From the NCBI GenBank assembly GCA_048013815.1, contig CM106585.1, positions 22,940,001 through 23,004,000 of the forward strand: DNA of 64,000 nt. Direction: 5' to 3'. Shown one piece after another: positions 3,795 through 57,719 of this stretch. The notes under the pieces are model-generated. The model worked only from the letters and a program-made list of their open reading frames with translations, was not told the origin of the DNA and searched no databases. Each line of letters opens with the position of its first letter. Positions within the stretch are counted from its first letter, which is position 1. The position numbers and the translations under genes are program-made. Source of the DNA: Setoptus koraiensis. Lineage: Eukaryota; Animalia; Arthropoda.

Positions 3795-4126
3795 GCTCGG
3801 TGGTGACAAATCGAACTTCAAAATTGAAAATTCGAATTTCTAATGGGAGTTTCAGCTGCTAGTTCGAAGTTAGTGGTTCAGTGTTCTTAGTTCTATGGTC
3901 AGAGTTCGGTGGTGACAATTCGAATTTCGAACTTCGAAATTGGAAATTGAAAATTCGATTTTCTGGAATGAGATTCAGCTGCTTCGTCGAAGTTCGATGG
4001 TCGTAGTTCCATGGTCAGAGTTCGATGGTCACAATTCGAACTTCGAACTTCGAAATTCGAAATTGAAAATTCGATTTTCTGATGATAGTTTCATCTGCTC
4101 TGTCGGAGTTCGATGGTCAGAGTTCG
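3795..4126 (+). repeat. TTCGAA-rich degenerate tandem repeat (unit of about 116-123 bp) running into the assembly gap
   Basis: AAATTGAAAATTCGA recurs at 3821, 3944 and 4060, with internal TTCGAA(A/C) heptamers. Confidence 0.8.
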
Positions 4127-4627
4127 NNNNNNNNNNNNNNNNNNNNNNNNNNNNNNNNNNNNNNNNNNNNNNNNNNNNNNNNNNNNNNNNNNNNNNNNNN
4201 NNNNNNNNNNNNNNNNNNNNNNNNNNNNNNNNNNNNNNNNNNNNNNNNNNNNNNNNNNNNNNNNNNNNNNNNNNNNNNNNNNNNNNNNNNNNNNNNNNNN
4301 NNNNNNNNNNNNNNNNNNNNNNNNNNNNNNNNNNNNNNNNNNNNNNNNNNNNNNNNNNNNNNNNNNNNNNNNNNNNNNNNNNNNNNNNNNNNNNNNNNNN
4401 NNNNNNNNNNNNNNNNNNNNNNNNNNNNNNNNNNNNNNNNNNNNNNNNNNNNNNNNNNNNNNNNNNNNNNNNNNNNNNNNNNNNNNNNNNNNNNNNNNNN
4501 NNNNNNNNNNNNNNNNNNNNNNNNNNNNNNNNNNNNNNNNNNNNNNNNNNNNNNNNNNNNNNNNNNNNNNNNNNNNNNNNNNNNNNNNNNNNNNNNNNNN
4601 NNNNNNNNNNNNNNNNNNNNNNNNNNT
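4127..4627. other. Assembly gap (about 500 N)
   Basis: Run of N. The ORFs 3940..4674, 4082..4735 and 4113..4631 that span it are artefacts. Confidence 1.
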
Positions 4628-5356
4628 TTAATGATCGCGCGGAGTGGAAGCGTGTTATGTTTGGTACTGGGTAGATGGCGTGTCGGGTGCAGAGTAAGCC
4701 CTTATGTGAAGTGTCACATAAGGTCGGTGTGGTGATGATGAGGGCTGATAAGATATCGTCCGGTATGCTTCTATCTAATATGGTCTCGCTTGTTATGAAT
4801 GAAGATGATTATGGTCACATGTATCATGGGTGGTTATGTAGTAGGTAGGTATCTCATAGGTGTGCAGTCCAAGTATCATAGGTGGCGATATCATAGGTGT
4901 GCAGTCCTGGTATCATGGGGAGGTATGAAGTGGGTTTGCAGTTCGACTACCATAGGTGATGATATCATAGGTGTGCAGCGGATACCTATGGTATGGTTGT
5001 GGGTTAATATGTTGTGACTTGGAGTGATATGGTCGAGAATGATATGGTTTAGGATGATATGGTAAGTCCGGTGTATGATGAGGTCTGGACCCTCGTGAGA
5101 AGTGAAGTTAGGCAAGTGCTGATATAAAGGGTTTATAATAAGTTTTATTTAAGAGTAGTTACTCGTATGGTGACCGATATGATAATGACTATCGAATACA
5201 GAAGTGTTTGGGTTTATATAGTAGTTGCCCTGCTGCGCTCTCTGGCGGATGCATGGGTGATAGTTGGCGTCGTGATATTACTCTCTTTGCATGAAATGCG
5301 TTGCATGCGTGTGTGTTGCTGCTGCTGGCGCCGGCTGTTGGAGCCGAATCATCACA
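4628..5356 (-). repeat. 3' LTR (distal end clipped by the gap)
   Basis: Direct repeat of 11393-12196. On the minus strand it begins TGTGATG immediately after the PPT. Contains TATATAAA (5213-5220). Confidence 0.95.
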
Positions 5357-8300
5357 GTCCACCCTTTTCTTTTTTGGGGTTAAGGATTTTACAAAAGCTA
5401 AGAATCTTTCCGGTCGCTTAATGGCCTCTCTGTTCCTCAGATTCCGTGCAACGGCGCTGGCATAGGACGTCGCTCGAGGCTGGTCCATTTTGGGTATTGG
5501 CTGCGGATGTGTCTCGTGGGTTGGTTCGTCAATTGGTTTTCTTTGTGGTTTAGGTTGAATTTCCATCATAGTCTCATGGTCACTGCTTGCTGAGTGGAAT
5601 GAATCATCCGAAGTGTCTTGATCTGGGATGCAAGAGGGTCTTGGTGTTGAGCCTGCCTCTCTGTCAAAGTGAAAAGTATTCGAAGGTAATTCTATGATTT
5701 GTTCGTCCGGAGCAGACGGATTATTGGTGCGTGGTGCATACAGCCAATCGCGATTTCCGTCGACTGTGAGGACTTGTGGTTGGTTTTCCGAAATAATCGG
5801 CGGATTGAATATGGGTAGTTGTTGTTTACGTCTGGTTCCTTGGGTAACTTGTTGCTGTCGGTTATTTCGAGGCCCCATGGAACCATCCATGTCAATTATG
5901 CATGGCTGGTCGCTGAGGGCTGGTCCTGTTAGGCTGTTGCTGCCTATGCTGTTGCTGCCTAGGCTTTGGCTGTGCTGTTGCAAACCCATGTTGTTGGTCC
6001 CCTCGTTGTTGATGGCTATGTTGTCATGGGCCATGTTACCTATGGTGTTGCTGCCTATGCTGTAGCTGCCTAGGCTTTGGCTGTGCTGTTGCAAACCCAT
6101 GTTGTTGGTCCCCTCGTTGTTGATGGCTATGTTGTCATGGGCCATGTTACCTATGGTGTTGCTGCCTATGCTGTTGCTGCCTAGGCTTTGGCTGTGCTGT
6201 TGCAAACCCATGTTGTTGGTCCCCTCGTCGTTGATGGCTATGTTGTCATGGGCCATGTTACCTATGGTGTTGCTGCCTATGCTGTTGCTGCCTAGGCTTT
6301 GGCTGTGCTGTTGCAAACCCATGTTGTTGGTCCCCATGTCGTTGATGGCTATGTTGTTATGGGTCATGTTATCTATGGTGTTGCTGCCTAGGCTTTGGCT
6401 GTGCTGTTGCAAACCCATGTTGTTGGTCCCCATGTCGTTGATGGCTATGTTGTTATGGGCCATGTTATCTATGGTGTTGCTGCCTATGCTGTTGCTACCC
6501 ATGTTGTTTGTTATGGTTACGACTGAGTCAGGCTGATTGTGGCCTTCATGGACTACGGGTGCCTGTGGCATCTCTTTATTTTGCAGGCGTGATATCGCTC
6601 GTGCTATTTGTTGATCCTTTGAGTTCTCCCTTAGTTTGTATGGCTTAATGTCCTGGATTGCAACTGATTTACATTTAAGGTTTCTCAGGTCCAGTATAAT
6701 GGCGAATCTTGGTTCTGAGTCCGTGGCTTCTCTAGGCAACTTAAGAATAACGGCGGGTCCGTCCCATTTGACGGAGAATTTCGATGCTTGATCTGGGCGA
6801 ACGGTGTGTTGTTTCAAGAGAACCGTCTGTCCCACTCGATATTGTGCTGAAGGATGGTCTCTATCATGGAATCTCTTTTGTATTTCTTGAGCCTTTTTGT
6901 TGTGGAAAATGATATCCTTTCTGATCAGTCTTCTCGACTGAGGAGCCGGTAGTGGAACTGATGGTTTCAGGTTGAGAGGAGTTCTTGGTCGGACTCCATA
7001 CATGACCTCGTACGGAGAATACTTGAGAGACTCTTGAAAAGTGGTATTATAGACGAACAAGGCCCATCGTAGGTGTTCGTCCCACCTATGCTGGTGTTGA
7101 TTGACGTAATTTCTCAGGATTTTGACGAGTGTCCCATTAAATCTCTCATCCATCCCATTGGCCTGTGGATGATATGGGGTCGTGAATTGGTGAGTGATTC
7201 CGAATTCTTCGCAACGCTTTAGATATTTTGCCGATGTGAACTGACTTCCTTGGTCGCTCACGATACGGACAGGGGTTCCATGTTGTGCGATTACATCTTC
7301 GAGGAATTCAAGGATCTCATTGGTTGTTACCTTGTCCTTGGCTCTCGCAAACCCGAAGCGCGAAAATGCGTCGATCATGGTTATAATATATCTGGCCCCC
7401 GAAGTTGCGTTAGTGTTGATCGGCCCTACTATGTCTATGTGCAGTTGCTCAAATAGTTTTGAGACTTGGATAGGATGTAATCTTCCTGGAGCAGGGCCTT
7501 TAGGTTGCTTGAACCTCTGGCATGTCGGGCATGTCTGGACATACTCTTTGATTTGGGGAGACATTGAGGGCCACCAATAGTGGTCTAGTTTCTTCTGAGT
7601 TTTTCGCACTCCTAAATGGCCTCCATAGACCTGGTCGTCATGGGCAAGCTCTAGAAGTAGGTGTCGTGACTGGCTAGGGACTGCCAGGCGAGGGTACGTC
7701 ATAGGTCCGATTATATCATGGTCTTGCATGTCATAGGTGTCATGTACTGGCTGAACGAAGTATAGGAGGTTGTCTCGTATTTCGAAGTTCTCGTGAGCTT
7801 CTATGTTGTCTATGATAGTTTTGAGCTCTGAATCCTCCATTTGATCTTCCAGAGTTATCCGCTTGAATGATAGCAGCTTCTCTATCTTGGCACTCAGGAC
7901 AGATTTTGCTAACTTATCTGCCTCCTCGTTGCCTGGGTCGTTACAATGTCCTTTGGTGTGTATCCATTCTATTTCTAAATCGTTCTTGACTTCTGCTAAT
8001 TCTAGGATAAGCTTCTCGTTTGTCAATGTTTTGTTCCTATGGTTCTTGAATCCGTCACTGAGCCAGCGGTCTAGCCAACTGGTGACCGTGTTTATGACGT
8101 ATTTGCTGTCCGAGACTATCGTGATCGTTTTCCAATTTTGTTGTTTTGCGATTCTGCAGGCCTGGATGGCGGCAGTCATTTCTCCTGTTTGATTTGATGG
8201 ATTTTCTGTGACTTCTCCTTTAGCTGAGAGTGATGGGTACTTCGGGATATGGACGGCCCAACTGGCTCTGCAGTCCGGTTTGCCGTTATGGTATGATGCA

Positions 8301-10396
8301 CCATCTATATAGATAATCGCCTCTGAGGGTTGCTTTCTCAAGAGTGACTGTTGGATGCGTTCTGCTGGTCCATGTTCCTCTACCTTGAATATGGGGATCA
8401 CGTTTGGTGGTAAATGAAGCATCAAGTTCTCGACTCTCTTAGCCTTATGCTTCATGTTGAATGCTTTCTCCAGTGCTTTGCTTGATGTAATGAAGGTGGT
8501 CATGGTGTCTGATAATATGGGTCCGAATTTATCGTAGGCAAGTATCAAGGCTAGCAAGTTCTTCTCGACGGTGGTGTAGTTTAATTCGGATGATGATAAA
8601 GTTTTGCTTGCTCGCTCTAATAAGTTGTTCGATTGTCCATAGCAAGCAACGTCTATGGAGGTTTCGAGTATATTTAGTATGACATTCTTGGGTGAATTTC
8701 TGGAAGGGATTAGCTGTGGGCTGGCTCCACGTAGCAATCCTTTAATTTTGGCACAGGCGGCTTCATGGTCGTGGGTCCAGTAGAATGGCTCCTTCTGACA
8801 TATGAGGTTATTTAAGGGACGAGTCAACTCTGAATAATTTGGTATGAACCTTGCATAGTATACCAAACTTCCGAGGAGTGATCGGACCTCGTCCTTATTC
8901 ATAGGTGGTACTTCAGACGCCAAGAAATCTAAATGTTCCGGGATGGGCTCTATACCTTTACTACTAACTTTGCGTCCCAAGAAGTCGATTTCTCTGCGGA
9001 AGAACACGCATTTATTCGGGTTAATCTTAAGATTGAATCGCCTCGCTCTCATAAGTACCCATTCAAGGTTCTCGTGGTGTTCCTTCGGCGTCTTACCGAA
9101 GACTAATATGTCGTCTATGTATACGAGACAGCGAGTGCCAATTCCTCCTTCGAATATCTTGTTCATGGCCCGTTGGAAGATGGCCGGCGAGTTCGTGAAG
9201 CCGAAAGGTAGGCATTTGTATTGCCATAGTCCTGTAGGGGTGGCGAATGCAAAGAACTTTTTGGTCCTAGGCTGGAGCTTGATTTGATGAAATCCTTCCG
9301 TAGCGTCTAGAGAGCTGAAATAATTAGCTCCTCTCGTGTATAGGAACATGTCATTCAAATTTGGTAGAGGGTACTGGTTCCTTATAGTTGCTAGGTTGAG
9401 GGGGATGTAATTGACTACTAGGCGTCTTTTCCCATTCTTTTTCGCTACAGTCCTACAGTTCGCTGAATAGGGTGACTCTGATGGTTCAATGATGTCATTT
9501 TGGAGGAGCCTTATGACTTGTTCACCTATATATTCGGTTTCTTGTAAGCTATGTCTTTTGACTTTGGCTGTTATGGGTCTGTAGTGTTTGAGCTCGATGT
9601 TTGGAAGAGGAAGGTGGATTGAAGATCCATTCAACTCCTCTGAGAAGACATCCTGGAATGTGTGCTGGAGGTCCTCGATCGCTCGGATGACAGGGCTAAC
9701 GGTTGGCTCCGTTTTGGTGATTGGTTTATGGACCGTCTCTCTATTTTCGTTTATAGGTTGAGGCAAGTAGGCCTTTGGTATGGTGAATGCTCCAAGTGTT
9801 TGTTTCTGTTCGCTTATGTTCTGGCTATTTGTTTGCATAGGTGGGCCAGGCTCTTGGTTTATGGTCGTTGAGTGAAGGTTTTCTGGTTTAGGCCAACTGA
9901 CCTTGGCAGGGACGGTCTCGAAATCTAGGATGGCTCCCATGGAGTATAGTTGAGGGAGTCCGAGTACGAGGTCGCATCCTAGTACCTCTTTATCTAGCTT
10001 GGCAAGTATTAGAAATTCTGCTGGAATAGGTGGTCTCTCACTTTTGAGAGGTTTGATGTTCAGGTAGGCTGACTTGGTAATATTGATTATGCCATGGTCT
10101 GCTGTCTGGGCCATGACATTTACTTTGGTAGTCTTTGGTCTGAGTTTACTCATTATGGTTCCACATGAAGGGATGAAAGAGGTTGTGGCTCCACAGTCTA
10201 TGACGCCTTTGAATCTGATGTTGTTGACTATGAAAGTTTCGGTGATGAGTTTTCTGGGTCCACCATCGAGGCACGATGTTGTGTGCACTACGGGCGTTGA
10301 CGTTCTGCCTCGCCTACTCAACGCCCTCGGGAGTTTAAATCTCTGGCACGCTCTTGACAGTCGGCGTTCCAATGTCCTCCTCCACAGTAATAACAT
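5189..10396 (-). CDS. pol: Pol polyprotein ORF (protease, RT, degenerate RH tether, RNase H1-like domain, integrase, long low-complexity C-tail). Probably expressed as a Gag-Pol fusion by a -1 frameshift near 10339 rather than from the listed start.
   Basis: Protease DCGA (D at 10196-10198). RT LPFG and YIDD (9110-9121). RNase H IDGAS/TGEM/SDS/KGH/EADKLA (about 7900-8320). Integrase H-H-C-C (AHDD..GGHLG..CPTC), D-D-E (HIDIVGP, VSDQG, GMDER) and a GPY/F-like WDGP. Confidence 0.95.
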   Translation of the reverse strand: MLLLWRRTLERRLSRACQRFKLPRALSRRGRTSTPVVHTTSCLDGGPRKLITETFIVNNIRFKGVIDCGATTSFIPSCGTIMSKLRPKTTKVNVMAQTADHGIINITKSAYLNIKPLKSERPPIPAEFLILAKLDKEVLGCDLVLGLPQLYSMGAILDFETVPAKVSWPKPENLHSTTINQEPGPPMQTNSQNISEQKQTLGAFTIPKAYLPQPINENRETVHKPITKTEPTVSPVIRAIEDLQHTFQDVFSEELNGSSIHLPLPNIELKHYRPITAKVKRHSLQETEYIGEQVIRLLQNDIIEPSESPYSANCRTVAKKNGKRRLVVNYIPLNLATIRNQYPLPNLNDMFLYTRGANYFSSLDATEGFHQIKLQPRTKKFFAFATPTGLWQYKCLPFGFTNSPAIFQRAMNKIFEGGIGTRCLVYIDDILVFGKTPKEHHENLEWVLMRARRFNLKINPNKCVFFRREIDFLGRKVSSKGIEPIPEHLDFLASEVPPMNKDEVRSLLGSLVYYARFIPNYSELTRPLNNLICQKEPFYWTHDHEAACAKIKGLLRGASPQLIPSRNSPKNVILNILETSIDVACYGQSNNLLERASKTLSSSELNYTTVEKNLLALILAYDKFGPILSDTMTTFITSSKALEKAFNMKHKAKRVENLMLHLPPNVIPIFKVEEHGPAERIQQSLLRKQPSEAIIYIDGASYHNGKPDCRASWAVHIPKYPSLSAKGEVTENPSNQTGEMTAAIQACRIAKQQNWKTITIVSDSKYVINTVTSWLDRWLSDGFKNHRNKTLTNEKLILELAEVKNDLEIEWIHTKGHCNDPGNEEADKLAKSVLSAKIEKLLSFKRITLEDQMEDSELKTIIDNIEAHENFEIRDNLLYFVQPVHDTYDMQDHDIIGPMTYPRLAVPSQSRHLLLELAHDDQVYGGHLGVRKTQKKLDHYWWPSMSPQIKEYVQTCPTCQRFKQPKGPAPGRLHPIQVSKLFEQLHIDIVGPINTNATSGARYIITMIDAFSRFGFARAKDKVTTNEILEFLEDVIAQHGTPVRIVSDQGSQFTSAKYLKRCEEFGITHQFTTPYHPQANGMDERFNGTLVKILRNYVNQHQHRWDEHLRWALFVYNTTFQESLKYSPYEVMYGVRPRTPLNLKPSVPLPAPQSRRLIRKDIIFHNKKAQEIQKRFHDRDHPSAQYRVGQTVLLKQHTVRPDQASKFSVKWDGPAVILKLPREATDSEPRFAIILDLRNLKCKSVAIQDIKPYKLRENSKDQQIARAISRLQNKEMPQAPVVHEGHNQPDSVVTITNNMGSNSIGSNTIDNMAHNNIAINDMGTNNMGLQQHSQSLGSNTIDNMTHNNIAINDMGTNNMGLQQHSQSLGSNSIGSNTIGNMAHDNIAINDEGTNNMGLQQHSQSLGSNSIGSNTIGNMAHDNIAINNEGTNNMGLQQHSQSLGSYSIGSNTIGNMAHDNIAINNEGTNNMGLQQHSQSLGSNSIGSNSLTGPALSDQPCIIDMDGSMGPRNNRQQQVTQGTRRKQQLPIFNPPIISENQPQVLTVDGNRDWLYAPRTNNPSAPDEQIIELPSNTFHFDREAGSTPRPSCIPDQDTSDDSFHSASSDHETMMEIQPKPQRKPIDEPTHETHPQPIPKMDQPRATSYASAVARNLRNREAIKRPERFLAFVKSLTPKKKRVDCDDSAPTAGASSSNTHACNAFHAKRVISRRQLSPMHPPESAAGQLLYKPKHFCIR
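5357..5375 (-). promoter_or_regulatory. Polypurine tract (PPT)
   Basis: Minus-strand AAAAAAGAAAAGGGTGGAC directly abuts the TG of the 3' LTR. Confidence 0.9.
5935..6503 (-). repeat. Coding tandem repeat, 111-bp / 37-aa unit, about 5 copies plus a partial, in the pol C-terminal tail
   Basis: GSNSIGSNTIGNMAHDNIAINNEGTNNMGLQQHSQSL repeated. One unit is shortened to 32 aa. Confidence 0.95.
10267..10339 (-). promoter_or_regulatory. -1 programmed ribosomal frameshift cassette: U UUA AAC slippery site, 6-nt spacer, predicted H-type pseudoknot
   Basis: Slippery heptamer at 10339-10333 is in the gag frame, and pol is in the -1 frame. Stem 1 GGGCGTTGA/TCAACGCCC (10326-10318 with 10300-10292). Stem 2 CGAGGCA/TGCCTCG (10312-10306 with 10273-10267). 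Confidence 0.85.
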
Positions 10397-11334
10397 GGAG
10401 ACGGCGGCTGACGGTTTTGTTGCATAGGCATCTGCCTATTGCCTCTATATTGCTGAGGTCTATATCGCTGAGCTGTGTTTCTTGGACTCGCGTTTGGTGC
10501 ATCTATGTTTTGCTGTATCGGGTTTTGTGGCTGTAGGGCAGGCTGAGCAGATCCATGTGGTGTGGATTCTTTTTGCTCATGGCGCTTGAACGCGGCGAGA
10601 ATTTCACTGTTTTGTTTATTCTGCTGTTCTACCAAGTCTTTCACGACTCCGGACATAATTTCCTTAAACTGGTTTACATCAAGTCCTGATGAAGTTTTCT
10701 GTTCGCTGGCTTCTGGTTCCTGGTCATATCTCTTTGTGACGACTCTTAGAGCATCTAAAGTAGATATCTCCTTGAGATCCGCTATCTGATTGAGCTTGTG
10801 TCTGACAGACGGAGTCAAATTTCTTATTATGGCCCGGACTATATCGGCCGGACTGGCTCCCGGGTAAGCCTTGGCGTATGTGTATGAATAGTCATCAATA
10901 TAGAGAGATAGCGATCCATATTGAAGAGTGTTATAGTTGAGACTCATGAGACGAGTATAACTTCGATCCTCGTGGCTTTCTGTCGAGAACTGATCGAGGA
11001 TTATTTTTCTTGCTTCCTTCCATAGGAGAGGCAGTTTCGGCTGTAAAGAACTTTTGAACCATGATCGGGCTGGGTGTGTGAATGCCTTATTGAGGAGGAT
11101 TCCTTTCTGTTCATCTGGAAAACTTAGGACCAGTTGTTCGAATTTTTCTAACCATTCGTGAACGTTTTCGCTTGAGGCTCCAGAAAATTGAGGTGGGTTC
11201 AGGTGCAGTAGTGATGAAGAGAGCGTAGCTGATGCGAGTTGGCTCGTAATCTGGCCAATTGAGTCCGTGATAATGGATGAGAATTCAATTGGATTGAGGG
11301 TGATGTTTTGCTGGTTTTGTTGGTCGTCTGCCAT
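10318..11334 (-). CDS. gag: Gag (retrotransposon capsid-like domain plus a CX2CX3HX4C zinc knuckle)
   Basis: 338 aa. PQFSG..ENVHEWLEKFE capsid-type motif and C-terminal CYYCGGGHWNADC. Lies directly downstream of the PBS. Confidence 0.92.
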   Translation of the reverse strand: MADDQQNQQNITLNPIEFSSIITDSIGQITSQLASATLSSSLLHLNPPQFSGASSENVHEWLEKFEQLVLSFPDEQKGILLNKAFTHPARSWFKSSLQPKLPLLWKEARKIILDQFSTESHEDRSYTRLMSLNYNTLQYGSLSLYIDDYSYTYAKAYPGASPADIVRAIIRNLTPSVRHKLNQIADLKEISTLDALRVVTKRYDQEPEASEQKTSSGLDVNQFKEIMSGVVKDLVEQQNKQNSEILAAFKRHEQKESTPHGSAQPALQPQNPIQQNIDAPNASPRNTAQRYRPQQYRGNRQMPMQQNRQPPSPCYYCGGGHWNADCQERARDLNSRGR

Positions 11335-11371
11335 TATGGATGGTTTGTTATCTGGTACTGGTGGATCTTAT

Positions 11372-11389
11372 AACCACGCTCTGCTACCA
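11372..11389 (-). promoter_or_regulatory. Primer binding site complementary to initiator tRNA-Met
   Basis: Minus-strand TGGTAGCAGAGCGTGGTT, 2 nt inside the LTR end. TGGTAGCAGAG is the complement of the animal tRNAiMet 3' end (..CUCUGCUACCA). Confidence 0.88.
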
Positions 11390-11391
11390 AC

Positions 11392-12196
11392 TTTAATGAT
11401 CGCGCGGAGTGGAAGCGTGTTATGTTTGGTACTGGGTAGATGGCGTGTCGGGTGCAGAGTAAGCCCTTATGTGAAGTGTCACATAAGGTCGGTGTGGTGA
11501 TGATGAGGGCTGATAAGATATCGTCCGGTATGCTTCTATCTAATATGGTCTCGCTTGTTATGAATGAAGATGATTATGGTCACATGTATCATGGGCGGTT
11601 ATGTCGTAGGTAGGTATCTCATAGGTGTGCAGTCCGAGTATCATAGGTGGTGATATCATAGGTGTGTAGTCCTGGTATCATGGGGAGGTATGACATGGGT
11701 TTGTAGTTCAACTATCATAGGTGGTGATATCATAGGTGTGCGGTCCTAGTATCATGGGGTGGTATGAAGTGGGTTTGCAGTTCAACTATCATAGGTGGTG
11801 ATATCATAGGTGTGCAGCGGACACCTATGGTTATGGTTGTGGGTTACTATGTTGTGACTTGGAGTGATATGGTCGAGAATAATATGGTTTAGGATGATAT
11901 GGTAAGTCCGGTGTATGATGGGGTCTGGACCCTCGTGAGAAGTGAATTAAGGCGAGTGTTGATATAAAGGGTTTATAATAAGTTTTATTTAAGAGTAGTT
12001 ACTCGTTTAATGACCGATATGATAGTGACTATCGAATACAGAAGTGTTTGGGTTTATATAGTAGTTGCCCTGCTGCGCTCTCTGGCGGATGCATGGGTAA
12101 TAGTTGGCGTCGTGATATTACTCTCTTTGCATGCAATGCGTTGTATGCGTGTGTGTTGCTGCTGCTGGCGCCAGCTGTTGGAGCCGAATCATCACA
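11392..12196 (-). repeat. 5' LTR (805 bp) with TATATAAA (12053-12060), AATAAA (11984-11989) and a long U5 containing CACCTATGAT-rich tandem repeats
   Basis: Direct repeat of 4628-5356 with one extra internal 74-bp unit. The boundary at 12196 is where homology ends and a TG start lies. Confidence 0.93.
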
Positions 12197-16686: not shown

Positions 16687-17389
16687 CTAATCAAGTCTAC
16701 GTCGTTTTTTAGTATTCTTCTTCAGCACTCCAGCCGAGAAATTGAATTTCTGTAAATTAATCGGAGAAGATGCACGATCAATCATTAAAGGTGTGTCATC
16801 TCTTGTCTGAGCCTCGGTGATCATGTTGCACATGACTGCTCTACTAACAGACGCCACTCTGTAGCTACAGCTTTTGTTTTTTTTTTCAGTGCAACCATCT
16901 TGAAATTTGATAGGCTCCGTTTGACATTCTTTAGTCGCCAGGGCCGGGAGCACTGGTGAATTCCTCACAGTGGATGTCACCGAGGGCTGATTTGTGTTGC
17001 TGAGTGTATTGGCTTGTTGAGTTGATTCCAGGGCTGGAGGGTCAGTGGTGATGATTTGACTCTGTGTTTCACAAATAATATCGGGACTTGAATTATTGAG
17101 TTCCGAAATCATTTGTGTTGGTGGTGCCTCATAGGCAAAACTCAGCACTGGCCTCTGAGGTGGTTGTATTATTGGCCTCATTAACATTTCGCGTAGGGGT
17201 GCGTCATTGGTCTGATGCTGAAGATTATGCCGTATTGTTGTATACGGTTGTTGCTGTCGTTGTTGTTGTAAATGTGGTTGTGGTTGTGGTTGTAGCTGTA
17301 GTTGTAGTTGTAGTTGTTGTTGATGCTGCTGCTGCTGCTGCTGTTGTTGTTGTTGTTGTTGTTGCTGCTGCTGTTGTTGTTGTTGTTGT

Positions 17390-17421
<32 letters not shown>

Positions 17422-18069
17422 TTGATGCTGCTGCTGCTGTTGTAGCTGTTGTTGCAACTGTTGTTGCAGCTGTTGTTGTTGTTGTAATTGCAATTGTTGT
17501 TGCATTTGTAGTTGTTGCTGTTGGTGCTGCTGTTGGTGCTGTTGCGGGTGCTGGTGCTGGTGCTGCTGTTGCTGTTGCGGAAAAACATTTCTCACCTGCT
17601 GTGGCGTTGTTTGAGGCGGATAGCTAAATTGTTGAGTTGCCTGGTTGTTGCTCTGCTGCAAAGGGACAGCGGGATTAAAAGAAGCAACTCGAGGTGTCGC
17701 ATATCGTGTCAACCTCGTTGGAGTTAAAAGAATGGCCCTTGGCTGGTATGGCCTTATTTGCGTTGAACCACTATATGTGTACTGGGCGGTCGTCTGTGAC
17801 TGGACGGGCATGTTATTAATATTGTGCTGTGGTCTTGTTTGATCATTGATGTTGCTAACATATTGATGCAGCACTTGTGGCTGACTGCTAGCATATTGAG
17901 GCTGATTTGGTGCACAGCAGGTGTTCGATAGAGCCTCCGCCATGCTGGATGGACCCCGACTATTCATGTTGGGAGCAACAGTCGTCATTTCAATTGGAGG
18001 TGAGGAATATTCCGGTGTTTTGAAAATACTTGTAACGTCCGGGGTATAATCGTGCCCTTCGGAGGCCAT
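16687..18069 (-). CDS. Uncharacterised poly-Q, low-complexity protein with a basic C-terminal NLS-like motif
   Basis: Open frame of 460 codons from the first ATG (18069); the frame is open from about 18165. Long CAA/CAG tract at about 17250-17580 and C-terminal KKNTKKRRR. No domain recognised. Confidence 0.7.
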
Positions 18070-20354
18070 CTCGTTAGATATTTTGGCTGTTTGTATTTGT
18101 TGAGTTTTGAGTTGTTGCTTGACATGCCGTTCCACAGAACGACCCAAACGAATATATAAATATTTCTAAATAAGTGGCAACTGTTACCATTGGTTGTAAG
18201 TAATTGAGGAAATTATTGTGAATATGTTAAGTGAAATACGCGTAATAATATGAGATCTAATTTGAGAGGGAAAACAATCCATTTACCATAATCTGCATTT
18301 GTCTGGCTCACATGTTTGTTTCTAAACAATAGTACAGTGTACATACGATATATACCATGCACTACACTGTAACAATAATACTGTTTTGTTCCATTATAGT
18401 TTATGCGCATGCGTCGAGAAGCCCGCTATTTTCAAACAACAATAAATGCGATCGCGGGAGATGCATAATACTGTATTTGTGCCCGCTCCCACACGCCGCT
18501 TGCCGAAAAATTTCTCCCGTGTGCCCCAATCACAATAATCGTTGGTAACTGTTAACACCAGCATGACTTGGTGACAATACGGCGACGCAATGAAATTGGC
18601 CAAAAATCGTTTTTCGAATGAGCCCATTGGTGTAGCTGCAACGACCATTGTGTATCCCTATCATTTGATCAGCACCTTTTCCTCTGGTATTCGTTCAGTC
18701 TGTATGATTCTCGGCCACTCGTACGCCTTTGGCGCCTCATACCCGTCTCGATTTTATACCGATTACCGTGTTCGATTACAGGAGGTGCATCAATGAAAGA
18801 TTGTGACTGACATCGGAGGATGGGAGTGCACCGGCCGGAAGTGACCTCTCTCCCCATTCAAGCAACAAATGTAGCACGATATTGTTGCTTTCATGCATTC
18901 AACCACAAGGGAAGGAATCGGGTGCCTCTCCTCTTTGGTCAGCTTACTTTGTTAGAGAGGTTCTATGAGAAAAGTGTGTTCTCAAGACAAGACACGCAGC
19001 AAAAATTCATTGCATCAATGTACAATCATTAATAAAATAGAGCATAAGTAAAGTAGAGCAGGCCAGAACATGTATGCCATAGAAAGATGACGATAACTCT
19101 CTTGAGCGTATATTCAATGTTTGTGTAGCAGAAACGGATCAATTTCAATTTAATTGCTGTTTGAATGTCTCATGCCCAATCTATTCATGTGCTCGAGTCC
19201 GTTTGTGTTGAAGAGGGCTGATAAATTGATATCCGTGTACAAGGACACACGACTACTCCGACGGAAAATCCCTCGTGGGCGGCAAACGCTCTCCCCCTCA
19301 CTATTTCTGCAATCCTTTGCCCACGAGATGCGATCGCTTGCAGTAGGAGTACACAAAGGGGCACACAAAGGACGTAGCACATCCCTTCTGAGACCCACGG
19401 CAACGACTGTATCTATTCACCTGTGAATACTCTGAATCGATTGTCGATATTCAACTGTGTCGGCCCGGTGAGCATGCTGCCGATTAGTCGTCGAGGATGA
19501 ATCATCACACAGGAAATACAACAAAAATATAATCTGCACTGTAGTTTGTATACCTCGCAGTGTACTGCTGGCATTTTGTTAACAAGTTCCTCAGTACATG
19601 TAAATATATCTGGCAGGTAAAGAAGAAAATCGTTGATCGTTTTTGGCGCGTTCTAACTGCTAACAAAGTGTGTTTTATTTGTTGGAACAGGCGCCAATTT
19701 TATTTCAGCAGATTCACACGTATCGTTGTTGCCAACCGATCGCCCGACAAACCCGATCTTCAGTGGTATTTTGGGTCGTCGGGTTGGTTCAGTTGTTTGG
19801 GTTGATTGGTTGGCTTGTCGGTTAATTGTACTAAATAGCCATGTGAGCTAATCCTAAAATCGGCGGACGACATCGCAATCTCATGTTAAATTGCAAATGC
19901 CAAAGACAAACCAAGCGCTAGACTTCGTACGCTCTTAAATCCATAATTAAATAAAGCGATTAGATAGTCGCCATCAGAGACATTCGTTTCGTCTGCGATA
20001 AGATTTATGGAGCCATAAATTTGATGAGAAGAGCAACGCGATAAAGTTAATTGTTTTATCAGTATTGATCATTTTACAAAACGAATGCTAAATGAGCACC
20101 AACTTATAAGTAGTTTGTTTACACACGTAAGCTCATTATGTAGGCCGCAAATTTGTGGTAGCAATTACATGCTGAATTGTCGTATTTATTGTCATATCAA
20201 CAAAGAGATAATAATAAGATTGAGGACATAATAGAGAAAGAGAGAAACTATACAAAAGTATCATGATATTGCATTTTCGTCTTGTATGTTAGGTATATAT
20301 ACGAACACCACTTGTATAGCCTGAATACAACTTTGTTGAAGAATATATGAGATA

Positions 20355-23300
20355 TCAGTGGTGATAATGTTTTGATTGTCTCATCTTGGGTGATTCGAAA
20401 TCTCTTTTAGCATTTTGCAAATCAATCAAGTCTGTTGGATTTGTTTGTATGGCTTGTGATATAAAATAGAAGTTGTCTAAATCTAGAGCAGACGACGAAG
20501 ACGATGATGATGAAGATTGTGACAAAAATGGTGTAGGTGTCGCAACTGCCGACCAATCTAGATCTGCTGACTTAGCTAAATGGTCTGCATTACTTTTATC
20601 ATCATTATTCTCAAACCTCTCTAATTTCATCATCATTGTGGTTGTAGACTTGTCTTCGTCTTTCCTGTTAAATTCATCATTGCGTTGCTCGTTATTAAGC
20701 GATTGTCCAGATCCATGTTGAACAGAATGTTGCTGTTGTAATTGCTGATCTATTGGTCTATAGTTGTTGAAAGATGATAGCATGTGCTCGCTAGATGATG
20801 GTTTTTGTTGTGAAATTAGAATAGTTGATGCGTCTTTATTGATAAAGTTGCTAGTTCTATTAGTATTAGTTGAGCTTGTAGTTTTATTGTGGTTGTTGTT
20901 GCTGGTGATGTTGCTGCTGCTGTTGTTGTTTAAGTTAGATTGCAAATTTAAATCTTTTGGTGCGTTGTCAGTATTTGTCCAATTTGTACTTTGTGAGGCC
21001 ATCATCTCAATTTGTGGTTTGATAGTTAAACTATCCGTTATGGTAAATATTTGCTTGTTGGAATTACTATTACTGTCCTTTTGACTATTATCTGTTGGTA
21101 ACATAGCGTTGGCATTATTACTACTAGTAGTAATACTACCGCTAGTATCAATGTTATCTAAATCCTTAGCATCATTTGCTAGACTAACTACTGTGTTATT
21201 TGAACGAACCGAAAATAAATTTGTGTCTGGCAGCGAATAATTAATAGTATCATTATTCTCACGTTGTTTGACACCACCGCCATTATCATCTATTGCTACT
21301 TTGTTGTTTGTATAGTTGTTGTTGTTCATTAGTGTTGATGTACCATTATTACTATTATTGTTATTATCACTGACCATAGCACGATCAAATGTGCTGACTA
21401 TGCCGGATTCGGCAGATGTCAAGTAGGTTATTTCTCCAGTGGGTAATGGCGGCAACTTGTTCCTGTTAGTGGAGCTAATTAGTTTAGAGGATTGAGATAA
21501 TGGACTTTTTTGTTTATAAAAAACCATTGAACCATGGCGCGTTGTATCAACCACAGGAACTAAACTCACTTCGCCATTCGAGCTACTATCACTATCATAC
21601 TCAGGGGCATTTCCATCATCAACTTTATTGCCAGTGAAATTGCCACGCTGGTTATTATTAGAGTCATTCGTTACACCATCATCTTGATGATGATAATTAA
21701 AGGATTTAAATTGCTCGTTCGTTCGTTGTGGTTTATTCGGCGTTGATGAAGCCATGAGAATTGGCGGCATATGATTCTGGTTGGTGTCAGTTTGCATATA
21801 GTTTATATTGATAATTGAAGGATTCAGATTCGCAAATTTATCATTGGAACTAGTCTTTGGCCACGATTTAGGGTATGACATTGAGACCGAAGGCCAAGTC
21901 TCTAACAGCTCACGGGAGTCGCTTTCTTTAGCTGACTCTGTTCCACTTGTCATGGATGATTTGAATGATTTAGTCTTCAAACTATTGTTGTTAGTGATAA
22001 TCGGTGTGCCTTTTGACATGTCTCTGTTAGAGGCTGCAAAAGAAGTAGCAGATAACTTGTCCTTATGGCCGCCATTGCCATCTTCTTTCGTTGGCCATTG
22101 CGGAGGTCTAGATCGTGTTGCAGCACTTTGCTTAGATTGATTATTGTCAATAAACTTAGTGCTGTCATTATTACCCTCTTTTGTAGTAGTAGATTCGTTT
22201 AGATTATCATCTCTAGTTGGTGTTGTCGGATTAGGAGCGCTTGACTTTGAAGATCCCAGCTTCACCGTAACAGAGGACGGATTGAAAATATTGGCCTTAC
22301 CACTATTACTACTACTGTAATCGTGATGTCTAGATGAAGCAAGGCTAATTTTATTTCTCTCTTTTGTTGCGCTTGATTGTTTAGATGGATTCAACATTGA
22401 TGCTTTACCTAGATATTTACGAGACACATTGCTTGTTAGTGGTCCAACATTTATAGTCGAATTATGGGCTTCATCGAGCGATTTAATAGTTTCTGTATTG
22501 GCTTCTTCCAATGATGTGTCTCTATCTTTATCTGGAATAGACGCATCAACGTTATAATCGTCGTCGTAAATCATATGCGATGCAATTGTTGTAGCTGTTG
22601 GCCCATCATTATGTTGTTCTTTAGATGTAACTAATATACTAAGTTTATGTTGGCCAGACAAATTTTTAACTGAATTACTTTTAGTTTGGCCCGAATCAAT
22701 GAACTGCTGTTTTACAGAAGTCACTAATTGACCATTCTTTAATTTGTTATTTTTAATTGTCTCACCATTAGTATTGGTGCCCTTGATTTCTCTGTATTCA
22801 AACTCTCGTAAGTGTTTGTTTTGATTTTGTTGTCGCTGTTGTTGCTGTCGTCTAACCTGGATGGGTATATCAATTTTATCATCAATGGTGAATTGTATGA
22901 ACTCACCATCACTTGGAGCTAGCTTTGAAGGATAAATAGATTCCATTTGGGAATATATGCTAGCTTTATGATTATTAGAACTGTCTCTATTTTGATTATT
23001 TCGTTGATCATCTAATTGTTGATTCGATTTGGACGACAACTGATCGGATACTGAAGAGGGATCATCATTTTCTTGTTTTATTAAAGTTTCCTCTTGATTG
23101 ATATGTAATTGATTTGCAGAGCCAATACTTTTTGATACACTAGTAGGCGATAGCGACACCAATCGTTCGGGCTTTGGGGGGCTCGACTTTTTATAATCAT
23201 TACTCTTTGGTTTGCGTGAATTTTGTTTATATTGTTGGGTGCCAATTTTCGAATTTTCTTGACTACCTGCAGTAAGATGCTTGACAGGATGTTGTGGGAT

Positions 23301-25250
23301 AAGCGGATCTTCATTGCCTGGAATTTGTTTAGCAACAGTGGCCTGTTGCTGCTGATCTTGATTGATCACCTGATTGTCCAAACCAATATTCTCTTGATAA
23401 AAGTTTTGGTTATTGTTATTGATGTTATTGTTGTTGCTGTCATCAGTTATAGGGATGTTTGACACATAAACTGGCTCTATTTGAGTTCCATATGTTGGTC
23501 TTATTGTGCTCGCGAGTTGTTGTTGCTGAAATTCTGGTGCCATATGATGATGTATGCAAATAAAGCCGTCATGATAATGAACTTGGTTATTGGCTTGATT
23601 GAGGTGCTTAGGACGCTGTTGGTATTGTTGATTTTCCATTGAATACAAAGTAGATAAAGTAACGGGAGGTGGTGTTGTCGTTGTTGTGCTACTAGTAGTA
23701 CTAGCAATAGAAGATATCAATGCTGACGGCCTCAACATAGAGATCAGTTTTGACGCATAAGACATTGGTGTTGTCGAACCTGTTTTTTTGAAATAACCAT
23801 TGATTGCGCTGTTATGGTTTAGTTGCATCGACGGGTGATATGGTTGACTTTGTGGCATCGGTATGATAGTGGCATAATCATTGGAAGTTGGCGGTGAAAT
23901 CTCTTGCATGGCATAAAAACTAGATGGATTGTCTTGTGTTTGTTGTTCACCTGTTGATGTAATTAATTGACGCACATTGATCAATTCCGTTTGGCTTTGG
24001 GGATCCACAATAGTTGCACCTTGTGGCAACGGCCCATTAGTGGTCAATCTTATAAACTGAGGCCTATGTGTCTGATACACTGACAAACTGATTGGTATTG
24101 GTGCTACAGTCAAGCTTGGTTCAGTTGTTGTGGCAACTGAATTTGAAGCGGCCGTCGTTGTGCTGGTTGTTGATTGATTCTCTTGTTGTTGTTGACCCGC
24201 TGACAGCTGCTGTAGGCGAGCTAGCGAATCTGGCCCAGATGACGATGAAGAGGTAGGTGATTGCGACTTTTGCAATTGATCAGCGGGTACATTGACCACA
24301 ACAGGTACATACTTGATAACTGTCACGAGCCGAGGTCTTTGATTGGTGAGGGACGAAGAAGACGGCAAAGAAGCACCCGACTTCCTAGGTGCTGCTAGGT
24401 AATACATGGATGAATAGACAGGCGAATTGATGGCTGAAGCATAACTTGTACCTGGTGCAATCTTTAAACTATTGATAGACATGGAACCTAAATGATCGCC
24501 TTTGCTATTTGCATCTTCTGTATCGTGTCTATACAGATTATTTTCGTCTGGTAACCGTGTCATATTACGACTATTTTGAGTGATGCCAATAAAATCATAC
24601 AAATTCTTTTGCTCGTTAACATGATGAGGCTGTTGTGGCTGATTTTGTCTTACTACACCTGACCTAGTCAATCTGGGATTCAATTGAGTAGTGAGGCCTG
24701 ATTGTGTTATAGTAAACGGTCTATTTGAACTTAAAGCTAAAATGGATGATTGTTTTGGCAAGTTGGTTAAAGCACTGGCTGGCAAAATCGAGATAGGTAT
24801 GGAATATTGGGTTCGAGGATCAGGTTGTGACCAATACAATTGTCGTTGATCTTTACTAACTTTCTCTTGGTTGGCACCGCCAAAAACGGTGAAAAAATTA
24901 GACAATTGGGCTGAATAGTCCAGTTTGGATGGCAGTGATCGTTGTTGTATCTCTGTTGGGCCTCTCACAGAGTCGAATCTATCCTGAATTGGTGCTCCAT
25001 TGATAAAACTATTTTCATCTTGATTGATGTGTTGTGCCCGATAGTTCAATGTAGAGCGACCATTTAAATCAATCAAATTAATTGGGGCGTCTGCACTAGC
25101 TTCACCCTTCACTTTTGGCCTATAAGTTCGCTGAGATTCACCGATAGTAGATTTCATTACAAGGTATCGGTCGAAAGATGATTGTTGTTGGAATGAAAAT
25201 TGGCTTGTATTCAGTAATAAGAACAATATTAGATACGTTGATTGTTGCAT
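20355..25250 (-). CDS. Large secreted low-complexity (N/S/Q/T-rich) orphan protein, 1631 aa, single exon
   Basis: 4.9-kb uninterrupted ORF with a hydrophobic N-terminus (YLILFLLLNTSQFSF) resembling a signal peptide. No recognisable domain. Confidence 0.8.
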   Translation of the reverse strand: MQQSTYLILFLLLNTSQFSFQQQSSFDRYLVMKSTIGESQRTYRPKVKGEASADAPINLIDLNGRSTLNYRAQHINQDENSFINGAPIQDRFDSVRGPTEIQQRSLPSKLDYSAQLSNFFTVFGGANQEKVSKDQRQLYWSQPDPRTQYSIPISILPASALTNLPKQSSILALSSNRPFTITQSGLTTQLNPRLTRSGVVRQNQPQQPHHVNEQKNLYDFIGITQNSRNMTRLPDENNLYRHDTEDANSKGDHLGSMSINSLKIAPGTSYASAINSPVYSSMYYLAAPRKSGASLPSSSSLTNQRPRLVTVIKYVPVVVNVPADQLQKSQSPTSSSSSGPDSLARLQQLSAGQQQQENQSTTSTTTAASNSVATTTEPSLTVAPIPISLSVYQTHRPQFIRLTTNGPLPQGATIVDPQSQTELINVRQLITSTGEQQTQDNPSSFYAMQEISPPTSNDYATIIPMPQSQPYHPSMQLNHNSAINGYFKKTGSTTPMSYASKLISMLRPSALISSIASTTSSTTTTTPPPVTLSTLYSMENQQYQQRPKHLNQANNQVHYHDGFICIHHHMAPEFQQQQLASTIRPTYGTQIEPVYVSNIPITDDSNNNNINNNNQNFYQENIGLDNQVINQDQQQQATVAKQIPGNEDPLIPQHPVKHLTAGSQENSKIGTQQYKQNSRKPKSNDYKKSSPPKPERLVSLSPTSVSKSIGSANQLHINQEETLIKQENDDPSSVSDQLSSKSNQQLDDQRNNQNRDSSNNHKASIYSQMESIYPSKLAPSDGEFIQFTIDDKIDIPIQVRRQQQQRQQNQNKHLREFEYREIKGTNTNGETIKNNKLKNGQLVTSVKQQFIDSGQTKSNSVKNLSGQHKLSILVTSKEQHNDGPTATTIASHMIYDDDYNVDASIPDKDRDTSLEEANTETIKSLDEAHNSTINVGPLTSNVSRKYLGKASMLNPSKQSSATKERNKISLASSRHHDYSSSNSGKANIFNPSSVTVKLGSSKSSAPNPTTPTRDDNLNESTTTKEGNNDSTKFIDNNQSKQSAATRSRPPQWPTKEDGNGGHKDKLSATSFAASNRDMSKGTPIITNNNSLKTKSFKSSMTSGTESAKESDSRELLETWPSVSMSYPKSWPKTSSNDKFANLNPSIININYMQTDTNQNHMPPILMASSTPNKPQRTNEQFKSFNYHHQDDGVTNDSNNNQRGNFTGNKVDDGNAPEYDSDSSSNGEVSLVPVVDTTRHGSMVFYKQKSPLSQSSKLISSTNRNKLPPLPTGEITYLTSAESGIVSTFDRAMVSDNNNNSNNGTSTLMNNNNYTNNKVAIDDNGGGVKQRENNDTINYSLPDTNLFSVRSNNTVVSLANDAKDLDNIDTSGSITTSSNNANAMLPTDNSQKDSNSNSNKQIFTITDSLTIKPQIEMMASQSTNWTNTDNAPKDLNLQSNLNNNSSSNITSNNNHNKTTSSTNTNRTSNFINKDASTILISQQKPSSSEHMLSSFNNYRPIDQQLQQQHSVQHGSGQSLNNEQRNDEFNRKDEDKSTTTMMMKLERFENNDDKSNADHLAKSADLDWSAVATPTPFLSQSSSSSSSSSALDLDNFYFISQAIQTNPTDLIDLQNAKRDFESPKMRQSKHYHH

Positions 25251-42176: not shown

Positions 42177-42354
42177 AATCATGATAATGTCATTAATAAA
42201 ACTAACTTGTAGAGCTACCTCAGAACAATTGACGAAGAGTTGTTTGTAGACAGGTAGATTTTCTGATTGATTTCACCGTGATCAACATATAAAGTTGGTT
42301 TCTCTTGATCATTGCGAGACGAACGTGGTAATGATTATTTGCTATGATTGATCA

Positions 42355-54841: not shown

Positions 54842-55038
54842 TATAAAGGCCGCAATCATATTAACATATGCCCACTAATGAAATAGTATAATCCTGATCT
54901 AGTAGTACACAGATTGGTAACTCTTTCAATTATAATTATTATCACTATCGTTACTATTATTATTATTACTACTATTATTATTATTAACATTGATATTGTT
55001 TAAGATTAATATATTAATAGAGAATTATCATTATCATC

Positions 55039-57543: not shown

Positions 57544-57719
57544 TGATCAATCATAGCAAATAGTCATTGCCGCGTTAATTTTTCAATAGTCGAGAAATCA
57601 ACTCTATATGTTAATCAAGATAAAATCAATCAGAAAAACTACCTGTCTACAAATGAGTTTTTGTCAATTGTTCTGAAGTAACTATACAAGTTAGCTTTAT
57701 TAATAACATTATTATGATT

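Follow-up and report, generated by a model that had tools for sequence, protein, structure and literature searches.

The window analysed here, a stretch of 64,000 nucleotides (nt) of contig CM106585.1 (Setoptus koraiensis, assembly GCA_048013815.1, positions 22,940,001 to 23,004,000), carries a Ty3/gypsy-type (Metaviridae-like) long terminal repeat (LTR) retrotransposon of an eriophyoid mite genome, whose Pol polyprotein holds two consecutive RNase H (RH) domains between the reverse transcriptase (RT) and the integrase (IN). The first of them, RH1, is the element's own gypsy-type RNase H, which has kept its fold and lost all four catalytic carboxylates, and the second, RH2, is a cellular, fungi/metazoa-type RNase H1 catalytic domain devoid of the hybrid-binding domain. 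The element is one member of a large and diverse family with a conserved layout, which includes at least 88 relatives and a second subgroup. This arrangement quite probably goes back to the capture of a cellular-type RNase H1 catalytic domain by a Metaviridae lineage associated with mites, which retained its native RNase H as a tether; the capture was most likely independent of the retroviruses.

The Pfam profiles place the protease (PR), RT, RH1, RH2, and IN in this order within a single open reading frame (ORF), with E-values that leave no room for chance domain matches. The domains are distributed as follows, with amino acid (aa) positions counted along Pol:

9998-10252, minus strand: protease, aa 49-133 (Pfam RVP_2)
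8972-9445, minus strand: reverse transcriptase core, aa 318-475 (Pfam RVT_1, 114 bits)
8342-8779, minus strand: RH1, aa 540-685, the proposed tether
7898-8323, minus strand: RH2, aa 692-833 (Pfam RNase_H PF00075, 94 bits, E 1.2e-26)
7166-7681, minus strand: integrase, with Integrase_H2C2 at aa 906-964 (67.2 bits) and rve at aa 983-1077 (63.6 bits)
5192-6856, minus strand: C-terminal extension of Pol, aa 1181-1735 (the last 555 aa), with no Pfam domain

The first-pass annotation of this DNA had proposed a Ty3/gypsy element with a dead native RNase H followed by a complete RNase H1-like one, and both parts of the proposal are confirmed by Pfam and by the alignments to Ty3 and to RNase H1. Specifically, the Pfam scan of the two domains returned RT_RNaseH_2 and RT_RNaseH for the first and RNase_H (PF00075) for the second, and the complete second RNase H that the annotation had located at about 7900-8320 coincides with the Pfam match. 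The span of 7900-8700 assigned to the whole feature was right in substance and too short in extent, as the native RNase H begins at about 8779. The normal gypsy integrase expected downstream was likewise recovered, with both the H2C2 and rve domains in place and with Ty3 IN as the best solved relative (118 bits), followed by the foamy virus IN (103 bits); the same ordering, with Ty3 ahead of foamy virus, is given by single-RH control elements. Ty3 RT is also the best solved relative of the RT-RH1 portion in a phmmer search (197 bits for PDB 4ol8 and 193 bits for 7q5b). The assignment to the Ty3/gypsy group is thus based on the paired LTRs, on the PR-RT-RH-IN order, and on an RT and an IN that are nearest to Ty3 among solved structures.

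RH1 is still recognized as a gypsy RNase H over aa 540-662, where it matches the Pfam models RT_RNaseH_2 (32.5 bits) and RT_RNaseH (36.2 bits). In the phmmer alignment to Ty3 RT, three active-site positions of Ty3 correspond to N575, N613, and S638 of Pol, and the fourth catalytic Asp has no counterpart in RH1. The loss of the D-E-D set, already deduced in the first reading, is therefore borne out, and the EKNL change that had been pointed out at 8558-8560 is the codon of N613. The third position, occupied here by S638, differs between the two Ty3 chains, being N in 4ol8 and D in 7q5b. The Ty3 residues in question are said to be numbered D358, E401, D426, and D469 in the 2014 work of Nowak and colleagues. 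The structure of the region was predicted with AlphaFold2 for Pol residues 290-850 on the basis of an alignment with 77 relatives, reaching a mean predicted local distance difference test (pLDDT) of 92.9 and a predicted template modelling score (pTM) of 0.81. In this model, RH1 retains the succession b1-b2-b3-a-b4-a-a-b5-a of strands and helices, with block-mean pLDDT values of 94-98 over most of the domain and of 81 at model residues 381-400.

RH2 retains the four D-E-D-D carboxylates, the active-site His, and the basic protrusion, and its active-site set (D698, E739, D763, H817, and D827) aligns to the corresponding residues of human RNase H1. The catalytic domain of human RNase H1 is the best sequence match of RH2 (75 bits), with a gap-free alignment that spans the basic protrusion, ahead of E. 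coli RNase HI (47 bits), HIV RNase H constructs (38-40 bits), and the foamy virus RNase H (30-33 bits), and the Ty3 RNase H gave no match to RH2 at E ≤0.01 in the search of solved structures. Moreover, when RH2 is modelled alone (pLDDT 93.0), it superposes on human RNase H1 (2qkk) over 141 columns with a root-mean-square deviation (rmsd) of 1.4 Å and template modelling (TM) scores of 0.82 (TMq) and 0.91 (TMt), to be compared with a TM score of about 0.7 for E. coli RNase HI and with an rmsd of 3.2 Å for the RNase H of the retrovirus XMRV, which ranks 45th.

The element, which had at first appeared as a single oddity, turned out to have many relatives. A homologue search with Pol residues 250-1100 as query gave 534 matches among 8000 scored candidates, and 88 of the best 120, which were listed (P0001-P0086, P0088, and P0089), combine PF00075 with gypsy RT, RH, and IN domains, with 39-54% identity to the query and a coverage of 67-100% of the region searched; two of them, P0086 and P0089, lack part of the N-terminus (83% and 67% covered, respectively). 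The other 32 listed matches are without PF00075 and match RT-RH1 and IN only, at 28-38% identity, and the RH1-RH2 part used alone as query returned 8 matches. All the 88 dual-RH relatives derive from Logan, ENA, and JGI contigs and none from NCBI; these contigs are mostly 4-9 kb long and include one of 55 kb and one of 102 kb, and the sole names attached to the proteins, from JGI, are 'ribonuclease HI' and 'ribonuclease HI/transposase InsO family protein'.

Residue conservation was read from an alignment in which the query and its 88 relatives stand beside 23 single-RH controls. The controls are the proteins P0095-P0120 minus three of the 26, whose matches were not colinear; P0087 and P0090-P0094 were left out because of duplicated domains. 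The two RNase H domains behave as follows:

RH1 first Asp: D in 1 of 88 dual-RH relatives, against 23 of 23 single-RH controls
RH1 Glu: E in 16 of 88 dual-RH relatives, against 23 of 23 single-RH controls
RH1 second Asp: D in 3 of 88 dual-RH relatives, against 23 of 23 single-RH controls
RH1 fourth Asp: D in 0 of 88 dual-RH relatives (86 gaps), against 23 of 23 single-RH controls
RH2 carboxylates: each of the four kept in 88 of 88 dual-RH relatives, domain absent from single-RH controls
RH2 active-site His: H in 87 of 88 dual-RH relatives, domain absent from single-RH controls

The counts for the fourth Asp come from a stretch that was realigned alone, as the global MAFFT alignment had pushed the control motif onto the start of RH2. 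When the first three RH1 residues are considered protein by protein, 68 of the 88 relatives have lost all three and the other 20 retain a single one, so that no relative retains more than one. The same contrast between the two domains emerges from the median pairwise distances within the family, which amount to 0.82 for RT, 0.79 for IN, and 0.88 for RH2, and rise to 1.33 for RH1, so that RH1 is under relaxed constraint and RH2 under the constraint typical of a core enzyme. The distances of RT and RH2 are correlated (Spearman 0.64) nearly as strongly as those of RT and IN (0.70), in agreement with the co-inheritance of these domains. These observations make it highly improbable that the tandem RNase H is an artefact, arisen through a chimeric assembly or through the nested insertion of an unrelated RNase H piece into an ordinary gypsy element. 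The scaffold gap of 500 N that adjoins the 3' LTR does indicate a region that is difficult to assemble, but RT, RH1, RH2, and IN share one uninterrupted ORF of 1735 aa, the identical order recurs on separate contigs in the 88 relatives and again in the more distant second subgroup, and the RH2 distances follow the RT distances.

A different accessory domain was observed in one of the single-RH gypsy Pol proteins. Residues 699-819 of P0095, encoded on a Logan contig, lie between RH and IN and match an OARD1-type macro domain (4j5r, 45 bits), which looks like a distinct accessory-domain capture in a related gypsy element.

The relationships among the RNase H domains were explored with a neighbour-joining tree of 221 RH domains over 142 columns, from which 12 of 232 proteins had been dropped for their partial domains. 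One cluster of this tree gathers 107 of the 115 Pol-linked RH2 domains together with four short proteins (bootstrap 161/200), although the tree is weak evidence for this main cluster. Strict monophyly of all Pol-linked RH2 domains was recovered in 0 of 100 bootstraps, because of the four short unlinked proteins and of eight proteins that constitute the second subgroup. The RH2 domains of these eight, which fall outside the main cluster, are mutual nearest neighbours, and the proteins are 29-33% identical to the query from RT through IN. Seven of the eight were scanned for domains (P0157 was left out), and the PR-RT-RH1-RH2-IN order is present in all six full-length members, five of which (P0148, P0153, P0156, P0188, and P0259) also carry C2H2 zinc fingers at the Pol C-terminus, after the integrase. 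The third Asp of RH1 is missing in 8/8 members, and the first three carboxylates and the His of RH2 are present in 8/8; the last Asp of RH2 is D in five, N in one, and H in two, the last being both short partial proteins. One member, RWS01320.1 of the velvet mite Dinothrombium tinctorium, annotated as a 'hypothetical protein', is the only NCBI relative found and the only one with an organism name among 22 Pol-like relatives looked up. The RH2 domains of the main family lie at a mean distance of 1.36 from those of the zinc-finger subgroup and of 1.31-1.35 from cellular RNase H1, and the zinc-finger subgroup is nearer to cellular RNase H1 (1.0-1.1). Such distances would fit two separate captures as well as a single capture followed by faster change.

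The provenance of RH2 was addressed by an exhaustive search over 1.84 billion representatives, which gave 10,548 matches at E ≤1e-3 and 23 at E ≤1e-30; the best 150 were analysed. Forty of these also match the RT, RH1, or IN of the query and, together with short fragments, fill almost wholly the first 44 ranks. The remaining 110 match RH2 only: PF00075 is found in 110/110, the N-terminal (hybrid-binding) domain of RNase H1 in 46, and a non-LTR-type endonuclease domain in one. The best RH2-only matches that can be named are cellular RNase H1 proteins of Holothuria, Protobothrops, Antedon, Gopherus, Diadema, Acanthaster, and Python/Liasis, with 85-93 bits and 33-38% identity (ranks 45, 48, 51, 52, 55, 66, and 69 of the best 150). 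A source in the RNase H of a non-LTR retrotransposon, which is also of the His type, instead of a host RNase H1 gene is accordingly an unlikely alternative, albeit one with some evidence of its own. Non-LTR-type proteins do occur among the matches, including P0264, which bears the endonuclease domain (76.5 bits) and is the 32nd of 102 by mean distance to the family, and P0282 and P0283, which join RT and RNase H and were found with the RH1-RH2 query. Moreover, Malik and Eickbush, to judge from passages that cite them, reportedly proposed a non-LTR source for the RNase H of some retroviruses. Conversely, P0282 and P0283 are only the 100th and 95th of 102, the closest non-Pol proteins with names are cellular RNase H1, the RNase H1 N-terminal domain is far more frequent than the endonuclease domain in the RH2-only matches, and the fold of RH2 is very close to that of human RNase H1. 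The capture of a cellular-type RNase H1 domain is hence the preferred explanation.

Four further proteins met in these searches (P0128, P0131, P0142, and P0145) are 509-804 aa long and contain two or three RH2-matching stretches each, with no RT or IN match. They look like tandem RNase H proteins.

The first-pass annotation had left two origins side by side, the capture of a cellular-type RNase H and descent from a retrovirus-proximal lineage. The former is favoured by the nearness of RH2 to metazoan RNase H1, and the latter is disfavoured by a proxy based on bit scores, in which the element and two single-RH gypsy controls were compared with the same solved RTs:

Element RT-RH1: Ty3 197, cauliflower mosaic virus (CaMV) 163.5, foamy virus 85, murine leukaemia virus (MLV) 52-55 bits
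Single-RH control P0095: Ty3 298, CaMV 211, foamy virus 124, MLV 139-144 bits
Single-RH control P0103: Ty3 301, CaMV 203, foamy virus 148, MLV 129-132 bits

The element also scores 28 bits against human endogenous retrovirus K (HERV-K) and about 25 bits against HIV. The ratio of the foamy virus score to the Ty3 score is 0.42 and 0.49 in the controls and 0.43 in the element, and the ratio of MLV to Ty3 is 0.43-0.47 in the controls and 0.27 in the element. By this measure of sequence similarity, the RT-RH1 portion appears relatively no closer to retroviruses than that of ordinary gypsy elements, which makes its independence from the retrovirus/Odin lineage likely.

The structural comparisons give a picture in which domain architecture and sequence affinity diverge. 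The whole RT-RH1-RH2 model is aligned in the PDB only by retroviral RT-connection-RNase H chains, over 570-598 columns; these include foamy virus (7o0g, E 2.9e-36, 583 columns, TMq 0.60), Moloney MLV (5dmq, 596 columns), HERV-K, and HIV-1. Ty3 RT fits RT and RH1 only (394 columns, rmsd 3.8 Å, 28% identity), and the same holds for CaMV RT (408 columns, rmsd 3.3 Å). The viral structure library BFVD agrees with the PDB, with the foamy virus Pol in first place. Fourth in the same library is the entry A0A7S8ZX98 (E 1.4e-38, TMq 0.59), which bears the name 'Putative RNA-dependent RNA polymerase [Aedes aegypti To virus 1]'; from its alignment to the model, its fold looks like that of a reverse transcriptase plus RNase H.

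Taken as a sign of kinship, the full-length matches to foamy virus and MLV RT would support a dual RNase H shared by descent with retroviruses, lokiretroviruses, and Odin, that is, a retrovirus-proximal lineage in mites. The equal domain order, the His-type acquired RNase H (H817, with His in nearly all the relatives), and an integrase whose score to foamy virus IN is near that to Ty3 IN speak in the same direction. Shared descent is nonetheless improbable, slightly more so than a non-LTR source, because RT-RH1 is much closer to Ty3 and CaMV than to any retrovirus, with a foamy/Ty3 ratio within the control range and an MLV/Ty3 ratio below it, because RH2 is far nearer to human RNase H1 than to retroviral RNases H (≤40 bits) in both sequence and fold, and because the gypsy RT_RNaseH models still recognize RH1. 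In addition, the search of Wang and Han for retrovirus-related elements covered 1,710 protostome genomes, and they report Odin from sea anemones only.

Some considerations weigh against the capture of a cellular RNase H1 domain by a gypsy lineage independent of the retroviruses. The independence from retroviruses, lokiretroviruses, and Odin would follow from similarity scores and not from a tree, and these three groups, according to the passages available, likewise possess a His-type acquired RNase H. The superpositions with full-length retroviral RTs have an rmsd of 12-17 Å, and therefore the domain order is common to both, and a like relative orientation is not established. The margin in favour of a putative cellular donor is modest (93 bits for the best cellular RNase H1 and 76.5 bits for the endonuclease-bearing non-LTR-type protein). 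Furthermore, the glutamate of RH1 is retained in 16/88 relatives, nearly all the relatives are Logan, JGI, or ENA contigs without host names, and the roles of RH1 and RH2 are predicted from residues and modelled fold.

According to the favoured scenario, an ancestral gypsy element would have captured a cellular-type RNase H1 catalytic domain without its hybrid-binding domain, most likely in an event separate from the one behind the retroviruses, and the active site of the native RNase H would have decayed after the capture. By analogy with retroviral RT and with Ty3 RT, RH2 would then be the sole active RNase H during reverse transcription, removing the template RNA, making the polypurine primer, and taking off the tRNA primer. 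RH1 may in turn function as a non-catalytic spacer that sets the distance of RH2 from the polymerase site, like the retroviral connection (tether). There is about an even chance that, in acariform mites, a large Metaviridae lineage has independently re-run the retroviral RT-tether-RNase H event, possibly twice.

The element can be set against the dual-RH systems that have been named so far. In the literature consulted, these comprise retroviruses, lokiretroviruses, and Odin, with a His-type RNase H of the fungi/metazoa type, and Tat of plants and Chronos and Archon of oomycetes, with an Arg-type RNase H of archaeal type; Troyka is described as devoid of a tether. In the Retroviridae, as in the element, RT is followed by a degenerate RNase H-like domain, then by an acquired RNase H of the His type, and finally by IN. 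They differ from it in that the element has a Ty3-like RT (197 bits, against ≤85 bits for retroviruses), no env ORF, a mite host, and an RH2 that is much closer to cellular RNase H1 than retroviral RNases H are, as well as an RH1 of fuller fold, including b5 and the last helix, compared with the partial fold described for the retroviral connection. Odin, as portrayed by Wang and Han (2021, 2022), resembles the element in being env-less, unlike retroviruses and lokiretroviruses, with gag and pol, a tether derived from a gypsy RNase H, and an acquired RNase H of the fungi/metazoa type. Unlike the element, Odin is reported by them from Actiniaria only, with 1-6 copies in each genome, and falls with the lokiretroviruses; the element's family is instead found in acariform mites and has no raised similarity to retroviral RT. 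A mite lies outside the host range given for Retroviridae, lokiretroviruses, and Odin (vertebrates, or sea anemones for Odin).

Tat, Chronos, and Archon are described as convergent cases within Metaviridae in which the native RNase H is degraded and the added one complete, as in the element. Their added RNase H is, however, archaeal with an active-site Arg, whereas the element has a His (H817) and an RH2 nearest to metazoan RNase H1, and their hosts are plants and oomycetes. Ty3 and single-RH Metaviridae are the closest solved relatives in RT and IN and share LTRs, gag, and the PR-RT-RH-IN order, but keep the D-E-D-D set of the native RNase H (23/23 controls) and have no second one. Insect errantiviruses, as far as the accessible part of the report goes (eLife 2026, PMC13524379), are arthropod Ty3/gypsy elements with tandem RNase H-like folds between RT and IN; in these, the canonical RNase H comes first, the 'pseudo' one lies downstream, and env is present, whereas the element is env-less, has the reverse order, and carries a downstream domain of the cellular RNase H1 type. 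Lastly, human RNase H1 (2qk9, 2qkk) is the best match of RH2 in both sequence and structure and shares its D-E-D-D set, His, and basic protrusion, but the identity is about 30%, and RH2 is embedded in Pol with no hybrid-binding N-terminal domain. The open-access and bioRxiv literature searched yielded no arthropod gypsy lineage that pairs a dead native RNase H with a cellular-type one; Repbase and GyDB lay outside the scope of that search. The element is a further, probably independent case of the tether-plus-new-RNase H rearrangement, located in animals and with an RNase H of the type found in retroviruses.

The remainder of the element was delimited by direct repeats and by alignment of the LTRs, and is composed as follows:

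4627-12196, minus strand: whole LTR retrotransposon, about 7.57 kb
11392-12196, minus strand: 5' LTR, 805 nt
11379-11389, minus strand: primer-binding-site-like motif TGGTAGCAGAG, 2 bases past the 5' LTR
10318-11334, minus strand: gag ORF, 338 aa, uninterrupted, with a Cys-His knuckle at its end
5189-10396, minus strand: pol ORF, 1735 aa, uninterrupted, overlapping the end of gag and extending into the 3' LTR
5362-5375, minus strand: polypurine-tract-like run immediately preceding the 3' LTR, its role suggested by its position
4627-5356, minus strand: 3' LTR, 730 nt, terminating exactly at the scaffold gap
4127-4626: scaffold gap of 500 N, adjoining the 3' LTR

The two LTRs are 96.7% identical, with 24 mismatches over 730 aligned positions and two indels of 1 and 74 nt. 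The motif TGGTAGCAGAG may be the complement of the 3' end of the initiator tRNA-Met, and Ty3 has a primer site that matches this same tRNA; no tRNA genes were found in the window. The gag product scores 21.3 bits against Pfam Retrotrans_gag, under the cut-off of 24.1, and its Cys-His knuckle is visible in the translation. Similarly, the protease profile RVP_2 scores 18.4 bits with the whole Pol and 22.1 bits with the N-terminal 250 aa alone (cut-off 20.3). There is no env, as gag and pol are the only ORFs of at least 80 aa on the sense strand of the element. The C-terminal extension of Pol holds tandem repeats of 111 nt (37 aa) at about 5819-6580, and the ORF stops inside the 3' LTR. Neither blastn nor tblastn detected a second copy of the element in the window. 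Just past the scaffold gap, at 3888-4125, lie tandem repeats of 116 nt.

The host was assigned through a V-ATPase subunit a encoded in the window, which scores 1140 bits to the mammalian a1 protein and 656 bits to that of yeast. A yeast or an oomycete (the hosts of Chronos and Archon being oomycetes), to which the long intronless ORFs had pointed at first, was rejected as host on the evidence of this protein. The protein is 83% identical to that of the eriophyoid Fragariocoptes setiger (Eriophyoidea), 99% identical to a Logan protein, and 64-69% identical to named proteins of other mites, ticks, and spiders; the arthropod host suggested at first reading is thereby upheld, and this protein similarity identifies it as an eriophyoid mite. 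The other genes recognized in the window are encoded by single uninterrupted ORFs:

29667-33302: SKI2-like helicase
49568-52756: SMC-like protein
57720-61073: mitochondrial RNA polymerase

An intron-poor and gene-dense window agrees with the description of the eriophyoid Aculops lycopersici, as given in the portion of that report available. Two minus-strand ORFs, at 20355-25250 (1631 aa) and 16687-18147 (486 aa), matched no Pfam family at E ≤0.001. The V-ATPase gene is present twice, as each arm of a perfect inverted repeat (42303-44860 and 55038-57595; 2558 nt, 100% complementary, 10,177 nt apart) carries a complete ORF of 834 aa for subunit a. Such a perfect repeat points either to an inverted duplication that took place very recently or to an artefact of the assembly.

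Eriophyoid genomes are thought, in the accessible part of the literature on them, to have lost introns through reverse-transcriptase-mediated recombination, and uninterrupted RT-encoding elements in these genomes are therefore of some, if speculative, interest. The finding may also be of use for annotation, since relatives of the element currently carry names such as 'ribonuclease HI', 'ribonuclease HI/transposase InsO family protein', or 'hypothetical protein', and the at least 88 diverse members of the family offer material for comparative sequence and structure work. The replacement of the RNase H, with the old domain turned into a tether, is treated as a hallmark step in the passage from LTR retrotransposon to retrovirus. 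If the proposed capture is true, the mite family would provide an extra natural replicate of this step in an animal lineage that combines an ordinary gypsy-like RT with a retrovirus-type His RNase H. It would help to ask why the rearrangement recurs, and it would imply that a retroviral layout alone does not mark retroviral kinship.

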